DNA of 63,873 nt, from positions 163,397-227,269 of the forward strand of contig RDEW01000044.1 of the NCBI GenBank assembly GCA_011109175.1. The letters run 5' to 3'. Source of the DNA: Dicyema japonicum. Lineage: Eukaryota > Animalia > Dicyemida. The position numbers and the translations under genes were made by a program. Positions 14,597 through 27,656 of this stretch are shown piece by piece; the first letter of the stretch is position 1, and each line of letters begins with the position of its first letter. The notes beneath the pieces were generated by a model. That model was not told the DNA's origin and did no database searches. It was given only the letters and a program-made list of their open reading frames with translations.

Positions 14597-15010
14597 TTAA
14601 TTTTTCAGGAGACAATGGGATTTCCTTGTTGCATTCTGGATTAGGTATTTCTCAAAGAGTAAGGATGAAGATGGATTATAGTATATATTTACAAATTCAA
14701 AAATATCAGGGAATCTCTCTATACACTCGAACAGGATACACTGTGACATGCTGAACTGGTTACCATCACTTTTCATTTGAAATCTGATAGCTATCATATT
14801 TAACCTACGTTCGTGCGATATTATTATTAAAGCACTCTCGAGAAAACATAAAATTTCCAAAAAAATTTTAAAACACAACAGACGGATCACCACATGTTAA
14901 CAAGCTCATGAAACAATACGCCATTATAAGTAACAAACCTTTCAAGAAAATGTATGGGCCTTCTCTATCCTCAATAAGACTGAAGAGAACATAGCCGATT
15001 AATTTAATCA
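14597..15010 (-). mobile_element. CRE-like RT fragment
   Basis: CILFECIERFPDIFEFVNIYYNPSSSLL parallels CILEACKERCPYIFELVNYSYGKPSSLL in ORF 10335. Confidence 0.75.
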
Positions 15011-15334
15011 CACATTCAGATGTCAGTGAGGGCTTAAAAAGGATGATCAAGTTATCATTGAAGGCTTTAACACAAATCCTCGTCACCTCAAAACAGTCAT
15101 TTGCTCTATCGATTTACAAAAAGCCTTCGACTCTGTCTCAAGGAAAATCACAACCGGAAATTGTTTTTTTCCCCGTCAATCCCAATATAATACTTTGGCT
15201 TGTTCACTTCGTCATGGAAGAAGGGCCCGTTGATACATGGATGAAACCAAATCAGTTTCAAGAATACTACACAATTGTGTCCCACAAAGTTCCTCTTTAT
15301 AACCTGCCTTATTTAACTTATACATGTCCGATTT

Positions 15335-16288
15335 GAAACAAATACGGGCAGTCCACAAGGAGACTCTCTTTCTCCTCTACTATTCACAATTTATTTGGAA
15401 GCCGCTATGAGGGAACTTAGACCGTCATACCAAGGAAAGACGGAAGAAGTAATCTACGCGGACGATGTAGACCTAATTTCTGAAGACAAAGAGGTCCTGG
15501 AAAACCTATTAGAAAAAGCACCAGATGTACTAGGGAAATGGTTTCTTACTGTGAACAGAGAAAAAACAGAACTCACAGAGATAAGAAGGATGAGTAACGT
15601 CCTAGAAGAGAAGTGGCGACAAGTAAAGAAACTCGGTTCACTTATGGGAGATAGCGAAGATATTTTACGTAGGAAAACTCTAGCCAATGCTGCGTTATAT
15701 AAACTGAAGAATTTATGGCTCAATCAAAAAGGCATTGACACGAAAATGAGAATCCTACTATACGACTCATTCATAATACCCGTACTTTTATATAACGCTG
15801 GAACTTGGGCGACCTCATCAGCGGATATGAAAAAACTAGACTCGTTCCACAGAGGTCAGCTGAGAAAAATAACAGGAACTACTTGGCCTACGAGAATATC
15901 TAGGAATGCCCTAACCCTAACCCTAAAAAAACCAATAAGCTTATTACTTGAAGACCTATCAGCTTAGAAGTACTGGAATCCCGATGGAGGCTCTTCGGAC
16001 ACGTGCTGAGGATTGAATTAACTTCCCCACCGAACATATCTATGGAAACATACTATGTTAGTCAAGAAGGCCGCTATCGGGGAAGACCAAGAACAACACT
16101 GCCAATAGTCTTACAAAAAGACCTGGTCAGTATAAAAAAAACCTAACAAATGCCGACGACCTGGACAGCATGAGAGCCTTGGCTAGGAACAGGGGAGCAT
16201 GGAAAAGGATGACATCTAACCTTGTTTCTTTTGCTGCACATGCGGGGCTATAATTAGTATGGCTCTTGTGAAGTGCTTAAATAAATAA
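15335..16288 (+). mobile_element. 5'-truncated RTE-type insertion with intact TSD
   Basis: PQGDSLSPLLF, YADD, LGS, LYNAGTW, RWRLFGH, GRPRTTLP; (TAAA)n tail; 15-bp TSD atacatgtccgattt at 15320-15334 and 16289-16303. Confidence 0.95.
15909..15926 (-). repeat. Interstitial telomere-type repeat (TTAGGG)3
   Basis: ccctaaccctaaccctaa inside the RTE ORF, replacing expected coding sequence. Confidence 0.75.
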
Positions 16289-16959
16289 ATACATGTCCGA
16301 TTTACCACGACCCATGATAAAGACGATTTTCTCCTATCATATGCTGATACCAATTAGTCGGATCCCACGATCAAGATATCTCCAAGGCATCAGAAAATCT
16401 GGGGATCACCTTCAACACACACATGTCGTTTGCATCTCACGTCGACGAAATCTCTGGAAATGTTCAAAAAAGCAAAGGATAATCAAAACTATTTTCGGTG
16501 GCTTTGAAATTGTTGTACAAACAATTCATTGAGCCATCTGTCTGCTATTCGTGTACGTCATGGGGAATCAATCTTCCTGTACGAACAATCAAAGAATTTG
16601 GTACATTCAGGCCTTAACAGTCACTACTACTAGTAAACTCGGAAAACTAGAAAAACCAATAAGCTTATTACTTGAAGACCTTTCCGACAAAATGGAAAGG
16701 GATTTGCTACTCTTTACAGGCAGTGCAACTCTAAACAATACATAACCACGACGTGTAGTATGAGAAGGGTATACATCATCCCTCTCCAATTCCTATCCCC
16801 GAAACCACCCTGCCCGCAGAGAAGTTGTTTTGGATCCCAGAAGGCGCACGATGAGAAAATGAGAAATCTGATTGAGGCCTTCGAGATCACTTAATTAATT
16901 TAGTAATTAAATTAACTATTGGTGTTCTATGGTTAATAATGAATATATCACTTTTCTCA

Positions 16960-17530
16960 AAAGATCAGACACTCTCGATTGGGTTGAACACTCAACTATA
17001 TGTTGCTAGTCACAAGATAACATGCCCCACAAATTCTGGTTCTTCAAATACGACTTTACTTTTTGAGTGTGATAGGGCATTATCAATTACAACCACTAAT
17101 AATCCGTCCTTAGTAAGCATTCCGTTCTTAGTAAGCTTAACTGAGTCATTCTNTTGGGATGAACACTCGACTATATGTTGCTAGTCAAAAGATAACATGC
17201 CCCACAAATTCTGGTTCTTCAAATACAACCTCACTTTTTGAGTGTGATAGGGCATTATCAATTACAAACACTAATTGTCCGTTCTTAGTAAGCTTAACTG
17301 AGTCATTCTGAATCAATTCCAAGCACTCTCCATTTTAAAAATATCTCTGCCAACATTGTTATGCAAGATTCCAAACTACCGATGCATCCAGTGATATGGA
17401 TACTTGCACCTTTGGACCTAGCAGATATCAGTTCCACGACGAAACCTTCATTCTGATTGAGCAGTATGGAAATTGTGATTACTATCATGCATAAACAGAC
17501 TAGCTGTATTGTTTGATTGCCGAAAGGGAA
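16960..17530 (-). mobile_element. Tc1/IS630-like DDE transposase pseudogene
   Basis: Minus strand SKGASIHITGCI, LVFVIDNALSHS, LATYS*VFNPIESV* (DNA..H and PYSP.LNPIE motifs). Partly duplicated around n17153. Confidence 0.8.
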
Positions 17531-24399: not shown

Positions 24400-25571
24400 G
24401 ATCAAGCAATTCATGCAGCCAAATCTATCCGAAGCTGTTTCAGTAGGGTCACATGTCACTCTCTGTCAAAAGTCTCGAAAATGTAAAGACAAATGACACT
24501 GAAATGGCATTTATAAGCACGTGCCAACTATCTCAGAATTGATGTACAATAAGTTTCACCACAAACTATTCCTGGGATAAATATGTCCACGAAGTATATC
24601 TTGATAACGTCACTCTCTCATTATGTGAATTGAAGGAATTTGACAGTCTTCCTTAAAGATATCTTGGTCTAGGATCGAACTTCTAAAAATTATGTCAGGG
24701 GGTCCACGCCATGTACCTTGTTATAACTGAAAATAGTTGGTACTTCTCTCGTAAAACAATTCTTCACCCGCCTTTCTAAATTGGTAAATCTAGTACCTTG
24801 GCATATAATTTTTTGGTGACTTCCATAAGATTGAATTTCTTTTATCAAGTTTTTGATTTCATTCAACACATCAGTCAACAAACTCCGAGTAGGCGATGGT
24901 CAGCAAATTTGTGTTAGAAACCACTTGTTACCATAAGGATATCAACGAAGATCGATGCAGATACCCATGATTGGGTAATATTTATAAGATCAGTAATCAT
25001 GTTACATTTCCTCAGTTTTTGTAAGTTAAAGCGGTAAAAATTTCCATTTTACATAACATTCGCATGATTATTTAGTAATGTATTTGTTGGATACAAGTTT
25101 GGGCATTTTGTAAATCCAACATGGCCAATAGGTGTTCTTGAGACGATACCATTGCATTTTTCGAATTGGAGGAACAGACAACTGNACCATTTGTTACCAC
25201 AAGGATATCAACGAAGATCGATGCAGACACCCATGATTGGGTCATATTTATAAGAACAGTAATCACGTTACATTTCCTCAGTTTTTGTAAGTTAAAGCAG
25301 TATAAATTTCCATATTACATAACATTTGCATGATTATTTAGTAATGTATTTGTTGGATACAAGTTTGGGCATTTTTTAAATCCAACATGGCCAATAGGTG
25401 TTCTTGAGACGATACCAATGCATTTTTCGAATTGGAGGAACAGACAACTGTCCTGAGCGATCCATTACTATTAAGTAAAAACAGAACATCATTTAGCATA
25501 GATTCTGTATGGTCATACATAAAGGAAGACTCTATATTTTTATGGTTTAAGATTATACCACATTTATTCAT
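24400..25571 (-). pseudogene. Possible decayed PWWP/PHD chromatin-protein gene
   Basis: Minus strand HWYRLKNTYWPCWI (PWWP-like), Cys/His-rich remnants near 24480-24580, many stops. Confidence 0.3.
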
Positions 25572-26731: not shown

Positions 26732-27656
26732 NNNNNNNNNNNNNNNNNNNNNNNNNNNNNNNNNNNNNNNNNNNNNNNNNNNNNNNNNNNNNNNNNNNNN
26801 NNNNNNNNNNNNNNNNNNNNNNNNNNNNNNNNNNNNNNNNNNNNNNNNNNNNNNNNNNNNNNNNNNNNNNNNNNNNNNNNNNNNNNNNNNNNNNNNNNNN
26901 NNNNNNNNNNNNNNNNNNNNNNNNNNNNNNNNNNNNNNNNNNNNNNNNNNNNNNNNNNNNNNNNNNNNNNNNNNNNNNNNNNNNNNNNNNNNNNNNNNNN
27001 NNNNNNNNNNNNNNNNNNNNNNNNNNNNNNNNNNNNNNNNNNNNNNNNNNNNNNNNNNNNNNNNNNNNNNNNNNNNNNNNNNNNNNNNNNNNNNNNNNNN
27101 NNNNNNNNNNNNNNNNNNNNNNNNNNNNNNNNNNNNNNNNNNNNNNNNNNNNNNNNNNNNNNNNNNNNNNNNNNNNNNNNNNNNNNNNNNNNNNNNNNNN
27201 NNNNNNNNNNNNNNNNNNNNNNNNNNNNNNNNNNNNNNNNNNNNNNNNNNNNNNNNNNNNNNNNNNNNNNNNNNNNNNNNNNNNNNNNNNNNNNNNNNNN
27301 NNNNNNNNNNNNNNNNNNNNNNNNNNNNNNNNNNNNNNNNNNNNNNNNNNNNNNNNNNNNNNNNNNNNNNNNNNNNNNNNNNNNNNNNNNNNNNNNNNNN
27401 NNNNNNNNNNNNNNNNNNNNNNNNNNNNNNNNNNNNNNNNNNNNNNNNNNNNNNNNNNNNNNNNNNNNNNNNNNNNNNNNNNNNNNNNNNNNNNNNNNNN
27501 NNNNNNNNNNNNNNNNNNNNNNNNNNNNNNNNNNNNNNNNNNNNNNNNNNNNNNNNNNNNNNNNNNNNNNNNNNNNNNNNNNNNNNNNNNNNNNNNNNNN
27601 NNNNNNNNNNNNNNNNNNNNNNNNNNNNNNNNNNNNNNNNNNNNNNNNNNNNNNNN
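26732..27656. other. Assembly gap (925 N)
   Basis: Run of n. Confidence 1.

Follow-up and report, generated by a model that had tools for sequence, protein, structure and literature searches.

Telomere repeats joined to a locally copied filler inside a young retrotransposon of the dicyemid Dicyema japonicum

Results

A young retrotransposon inserted in a host repeat

The window (the whole stretch of DNA analysed here, 63,873 nucleotides of a Dicyema japonicum contig) contains a 5′-truncated non-LTR retrotransposon, which is inserted in a host repeat element and carries an internal patch of foreign sequence (Table 1). The empty site was seen in a paralogue of the host repeat (L032), which is uninterrupted and has a single 15-bp sequence where the window has two. 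The open reading frame at 15395-15964 matches RVT_1, in the C-terminal part of the reverse-transcriptase domain, and an exact-product look-up with this frame, which ends in the patch, found nothing. The name RTE-like comes from an earlier reading; the element is known here from its reverse-transcriptase domain alone, and we use the name as a putative one.

When the patch is set aside, the copy shares 99-99.5% identity with its closest relatives; it differs by about 3-4 substitutions per 574 nt, three of which are private. This identity, together with the small number of private differences, marks the copy as young. An earlier note on this DNA had called the element young and flanked by target-site duplications (TSDs), and this description holds, with a TSD of 15 bp.

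Table 1 Features of the patched locus in the window and of the four other telomere-repeat loci
Feature	Position	Strand	Remarks
Host repeat element, upstream part	14941..15334	+	Colinear with paralogues L032-L034
TSD, left copy, 15 bp	15320..15334	.	Paralogue empty site has one copy
5′-truncated young non-LTR (RTE-like) retrotransposon, carrier of the patch	15335..16288	+	Homology to other copies over 15331-16288
(CCCTAA)3	15909..15926	+	G-rich strand is the minus strand; first C common to the retrotransposon
Filler, 25 nt, direct orientation	15927..15951	+	Copied from 16651-16675
AGACCT, 6-nt microhomology	15952..15957	+	Common to donor 16676-16681 and the R-P codons of the retrotransposon
TSD, right copy, 15 bp	16289..16303	.	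Paralogue comparison
Host repeat element, downstream part, includes donor	16289..16896	+	Paralogue comparison
Donor, CTAG then the 31 copied nt, in the flanking host element	16647..16681	+	Native to the host-element family
L063, second telomere-repeat patch, in another very young retrotransposon family	2456-2507 (C329:105155-105206)		
L062, (TTAGGG)5 then, within 20 nt, an 18-nt inverted copy	2492-2558 (C313:7991-8057)		
L064, (CCCTAA)3 between two 22-nt direct repeats	2415-2515 (C334:971414-971514)		
L061, (CCCTAA)2, CCTTAA, (CCCTAA)3	1847-1882 (C202:1847-1882)		Interstitial, 6.1-kb contig

Telomere repeats and a 31-nt copy replace codons of the element

In ordinary copies of the family, AATGC, a stretch of 22 nt and AGACCT follow one another and correspond to N-A-L-Y-K-R-C-S-T-R-P-I-S. 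We compared the patch site across 16 of 29 loci, namely those in which both anchors were readable by script. The 22-nt stretch (Y-K-R-C-S-T), with or without a point change, was present in all 16 copies and the patch in none, which confirms the earlier claim that the codons between N-A-L and R-P-I-S have been replaced. A subfamily origin of the patch was ruled out, as the other copies are all without it. In a crude and noisy screen of the last ~950 bp of 29 other copies, no comparable internal patch was found.

The replacing sequence begins with three perfect CCCTAA units at a non-terminal site, with chromosomal sequence on both sides, and continues directly with an exact 31-nt copy (15927-15957) of 16651-16681. 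A repeat finder returned the pair as a direct repeat to 16647-16684 with a spacing of 724, exact over 31 nt and 95% identical over 38 nt. Thus, the combination of (CCCTAA)3 with an exact 31-nt copy of sequence 724 bp downstream, as first noticed, was confirmed by both the window sequence and the repeat finder, and the family copies likewise confirmed that AGACCT is at once the end of the patch and the element's own R-P codons. The net change is a loss of 22 nt and a gain of 42 nt, of which 17 are telomeric (the C shared with the element not counted) and 25 come from the donor alone; it shifts the reading frame and then leads to a stop.

The homologies at the outer junctions of the patch are C (1 nt) on the left and AGACCT (6 nt) on the right. 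At the inner junction, between the telomere repeats and the filler, the donor reads CTAG and the patch CTAA. The earlier note placed the donor's CTA in the telomere register; three of these four positions match, but the junction base itself is mismatched. The pattern as a whole is not due to chance, since the 31-mer occurs exactly twice in 67.5 Mb, and since (CCCTAA)3 is found at five loci as against 0 matches for the reversed control pattern.

The filler was copied from local DNA

The whole assembly (67,542,437 bases in 377 pieces) was searched for the 31-mer, and its only two exact matches were the patch and 16651-16681. In paralogues of the host repeat, the donor stretch has one to four differences, with two in each of the two nearest. 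Since the exact 31-mer is confined to this locus and even the nearest paralogues differ from it at two positions, the template was local DNA, that is, the locus itself, its allele or its sister. We also considered the 31-mer as a mobile unit with a telomeric head; this was rejected, because there are only two copies and the sequence is native to the host family.

The donor and patch sites also resemble each other at the peptide level: 16653-16667 encodes K-P-I-S-L and 15952-15966 encodes R-P-I-S-L, with 12 of 15 nt matching by manual count. Judged from their sequences, both sites appear to encode one conserved C-terminal motif, each in a different non-LTR element. Such homeology may have aided the meeting of the donor and patch sites, although the register of the junction is different. 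Close to the donor, at 16598, the assembly has T. The only contigs of the public runs X1 and X2 that cover the position read C, as do the paralogues; either the two bases are allelic or the consensus is wrong here.

Similar telomere-repeat loci elsewhere in the genome

Perfect (CCCTAA)3 was found at five loci in the whole assembly, none of them terminal. No terminal TTAGGG arrays were detected anywhere in the assembly, and the hexamer is consequently only putatively the telomere repeat of this organism. A search of the genome for the telomerase RBD family PF12009 gave no match, and the control genomes were equally silent.

In four of the five (CCCTAA)3 loci, the window included, the telomeric run is accompanied by short copies of nearby sequence. 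Set against seven paralogues, L063 has gained 52 nt cleanly and has lost 1 nt at most. The insert is made up of 28 telomeric nt and two 11-nt copies of sequence further downstream, one direct (from 31 nt away) and one inverted (from ~110 nt away). In L062, the source of the inverted copy lies ~200 nt upstream (L062:2311-2328), and the left flank has a tRNA-like B-box motif, by which it may be a SINE. The run in L064 is located at a sharp 5′ boundary of a repeat family, where 38 matches begin at one base, and no TSD enclosing the telomeric filler was found within 5 kb. A 500-nt stretch of L064 recurs at 97% identity at C334:947408-947906 with a (CCCTAA)2 match inside the copy, and the run thus appears old enough to have been duplicated with its surroundings. 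In L061, no local filler of ≥12 nt was found. Apart from the patch in the window, three loci (L062, L063 and L064) thus have this build.

Public contigs and assembly features around the patch

We inspected the contigs of four public runs for the back-joint from 16681 to 15958. None was listed, which is a weak result because contigs break at repeats. The contigs of the four runs are 31-213 nt long in this repeat, those from paralogous copies swamp 15600-16290, and none of those listed resolves the patch. The X1 and X2 contigs pass straight through 16651-16681, which we did not count against the patch: a single-copy path between very high-copy repeat words would be expected, on reasoning only, to be dropped in graph clean-up. 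One 196-nt X1 contig fits 16519-16685, after which it has 29 nt that do not match the window; a circle or patch junction would place this departure at 16681 instead.

Further downstream, 16973-17152 and 17154-17333 are tandem copies, 93% identical, with a single N (17153) between them, and the paralogues have only one copy. This tandem probably represents two haplotypes set one after the other by the scaffolder. Further single Ns are located at 25185, 29956, 33031, 34483 and 39619, and a gap of 925 Ns spans 26732-27656.

Discussion

We consider the chances about even that the patch is the scar of a single double-strand-break repair with template switching, dating from after the retrotransposon insertion. 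What is observed is a unique replacement with a local donor and microhomologies, and an architecture that recurs; for the break, the enzymes and the order of steps, we infer the following course. A double-strand break would have struck the inserted element in the 22 nt that separate its N-A-L codons from its R-P-I-S codons, and would have been closed by error-prone, microhomology-primed end joining with a template switch. One 3′ end would have copied 25-31 nt, with AGACCT as its point of entry or exit, from single-stranded DNA 724 bp downstream at the same locus. About three telomere repeats would have been added, through telomerase acting on the G-rich (minus) strand or through copying of a telomeric template, and the join to the remaining end would have been made through the single C. 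Such repair would leave templated filler beside a short interstitial telomeric sequence, as a one-off scar at the germline or population level that would have no function.

The steps could have been taken in two orders. In order (a), the minus-strand 3′ end on the right side of the break (the complement of AGACCT) would pair at 16676-16681 and copy 25 nt; after its release, it would be extended with TTAGGG and joined to the left end by one G:C pair. In order (b), the left 3′ end (...AATGC) would copy a G-rich telomeric template, after which CTA would anneal to the resected right strand at 16647-16649 and be extended by 31 nt across one mismatch. Dissociation and re-annealing through AGACCT at 15952-15957 would complete this order. 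Both orders agree with the polarity of the repeats, which gives no choice between them. Order (b) would account for the CTA coincidence and would need only ~730 nt of resection, while order (a) would employ telomerase directly.

The repair reading is strengthened by the three further loci in which a telomeric run stands with local copies. Templated end joining with telomere-repeat addition had been put forward in the earlier note as the alternative to a circle; given the local donor, the microhomologies and the three similar loci, it is now the best-supported reading. A family search showed that family-A polymerase domains are encoded in the genome, at C223:2123318-2124030, C334:273056 and C371:67354, and polymerase theta is only a candidate identity for them. 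Scars left by polymerase theta are characterised by priming from single nucleotides, reiterated cycles of priming, extension and dissociation, and errors close to where synthesis breaks off (PMC5068794, PMC4912351, PMC2943611). Telomeric insertions at breaks in vertebrates are accompanied by deletions, extra sequence, duplications and inversions (PMC7215372, PMC2246262); among the horse loci, 30% have deletions and 29% have complex changes (PMC7215372). The distance of the template counts against the repair reading: templated inserts in C. elegans derive mostly from within about 20 bp of the break, with 2-3% coming from distant sites (PMC5068794), so that 724 bp is unusually far. The telomerase search without a match, which carries little weight given its silent controls, and the lack of terminal arrays are further points against it.

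The patch might instead have arisen during the insertion itself, by target-primed reverse transcription in which the cDNA (minus strand) switched templates, an origin that we hold to be rather unlikely. Target-primed reverse transcription of LINEs is known to involve template switching and extra nucleotides, as seen in chimeric retrocopies and 5′-junction filler. The cDNA would leave the element RNA at AGACCT, copy 25 nt locally, receive TTAGGG units from telomerase acting on its free 3′ end or through a jump to a CCCUAA-sense RNA, rejoin the element RNA 22 nt further upstream and continue to 15335. The two patches that lie in retrotransposons, one in the window and one in L063, do have their G-rich strand on the cDNA strand, and the order along cDNA synthesis is the same, from the 3′ part of the element through local filler and telomeric run to its 5′ part. 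Both retrotransposon copies are also very young. Two of the five (CCCTAA)3 loci fall in two families that had 652 and 173 first-look candidates and probably make up a few per cent of the genome. This is above expectation (roughly 0.01-0.03 by our own binomial estimate). However, the donor lies 363-393 bp past the 3′ junction of the element, in duplex flanking DNA outside the element RNA, and the cDNA would have to jump three times in succession and land almost exactly back on the RNA that it had left. Further points against this origin are the lack of anything comparable in the crude screen of other copies described above, and the polarity in L062, which is opposite relative to the SINE-like flank. 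A chimeric read, or a mis-fill made on closing a repeat-derived gap in a short-read, scaffolded and haplotype-merged assembly, is less probable still, and we regard it as improbable. The sample had a heterozygosity of 1.24%, and the published pipeline combined Platanus, SSPACE, GapCloser and HaploMerger (PMC6736024). The patch is situated inside a high-copy repeat, close to the expected meeting point of fills that start from the two unique flanks. The probable haplotype-redundancy artefact about 470 bp downstream of the donor, and the C read by contigs of two runs at 16598 against the T of the assembly, point in the same direction. On the other side, overlaps as short as 1 nt and 6 nt do not allow a k-mer or overlap assembler to make a join, which means that the junctions must be present in reads. 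The sole exact source of the filler is 724 bp away on the same contig, as would suit a local biological event, and a like architecture occurs on other contigs, with inverted copies included and one locus present as a 97% duplicate.

The earlier note had preferred a circle of 724 bp (15958-16681) that was cut out through AGACCT and then opened and given a telomere cap at about 16650; a related version has a break at ~16650 healed with telomere repeats in programmed DNA elimination, and in either case a piece of that molecule would have re-entered the chromosome. We now consider such a history highly improbable. The joining of 16651-16681 to 15958 is formally a circle junction (or a tandem-duplication junction), and the repeats run in the direction expected if a telomere capped the left end of a fragment that began at 16651. 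Extrachromosomal circles of dicyemids are also established in the literature: there are many small ones, and the "long" circular contigs of Dicyema sp. have a median of 702 bp (PMC6543705). Their protein domains, however, are mitochondrial only (PMC6543705), whereas the segment here is retrotransposon coding sequence, which is retained and colinear in the chromosome. No third copy of the 31-mer, and hence no separate circle junction or capped end, exists in the whole assembly, and the 11-22-nt fillers at the other loci, some of them inverted, are unexplained by circles. Moreover, formation, opening and capping of a circle, a second break and re-integration would be required in place of one template switch. 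As a single microhomology-primed switch through AGACCT writes the identical string, a circle is not required, and the claim of a circle opened and capped at ~16650 is unsupported. The same final string would result from two events, namely a tandem duplication of 15958-16681 via AGACCT and a later deletion of ~715 bp sealed with telomere repeats, the deletion taking the 22 nt plus most of the first duplicate. Tandem duplications at short homologies are common, but two independent rare events would have to fall in a copy with so few substitutions, and similar small fillers elsewhere would be left without an account; we give this course very little credence.

The single-repair reading has close parallels in known systems. 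The patch is like the short interstitial telomeric sequences of primates, rodents and horse in being a short, perfect internal run of hexamers (PMC2246262, PMC7215372, PMC8537989), inserted at one point with a deletion, additions, nearby duplications or inversions and little junction homology. It is unlike them in that the empty state is known here from paralogous repeat copies rather than from orthologues, the source of the filler has been located 724 bp away, and the host is a spiralian parasite. With polymerase-theta end joining, or synthesis-dependent microhomology-mediated end joining (PMC5068794, PMC4912351, PMC2943611), it shares a deletion with an insert identical to nearby sequence, priming from one or a few nucleotides, a mismatch where the copy ends and signs of reiterated cycles, and the sister loci have both direct and inverted (snap-back) copies. 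As far as the sequence can tell, the differences from that system would be the far template, as against the usual ≤20 bp, and the telomeric run in the insert.

The other systems resemble the patch in part. Like products of template switching in LINE target-primed reverse transcription, it belongs to a young TSD-flanked copy, its pieces are all in sense orientation, and its G-rich strand is the cDNA strand; unlike them, it lies inside the copy and would require the cDNA to come back to the same RNA, and its template was flanking genomic DNA rather than another abundant RNA. De novo telomere addition during the programmed DNA elimination of nematodes and ciliates also sets repeats against non-telomeric sequence with little homology, but here there are three internal repeats with chromosomal flanks on both sides and no terminal array. 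The spacing is near the size reported for dicyemid circles (PMC6543705), but the segment is retained in the chromosome. The patch is therefore best read as belonging to a known class, in which break repair leaves an interstitial telomeric sequence together with templated filler, and which is found here in a dicyemid and at several loci.

So read, these loci would mean that a highly reduced spiralian parasite closes breaks much as vertebrates, worms and flies do, with telomere repeats and template-switch filler, and that its 67.5-Mb genome has at least four such scars. They also carry a warning: strings that look like circle junctions are by themselves poor evidence for circles, because one template switch gives the same string. 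If the telomeric fillers arise in retrotransposition instead, they would point to crosstalk of telomerase or telomeric RNA with LINE cDNA. If the circle or healed-end history were true, telomere healing and circle formation would take place at ordinary repeat DNA and feed sequence into the germline.

Shorter telomere-like runs are more widespread. In the whole assembly, (CCCTAA)2 has 61 matches, compared with 17 for the control, and the (CCCTAA)2 loci number roughly 45. Clusters of such matches are located at C310:259820-261703, C316:65342-65566, C339:46433-46574, C246:187373-187459, C24:1209630-1209677 and C356:651904-651941, which suggests degenerate telomere-like arrays or satellites at these sites.
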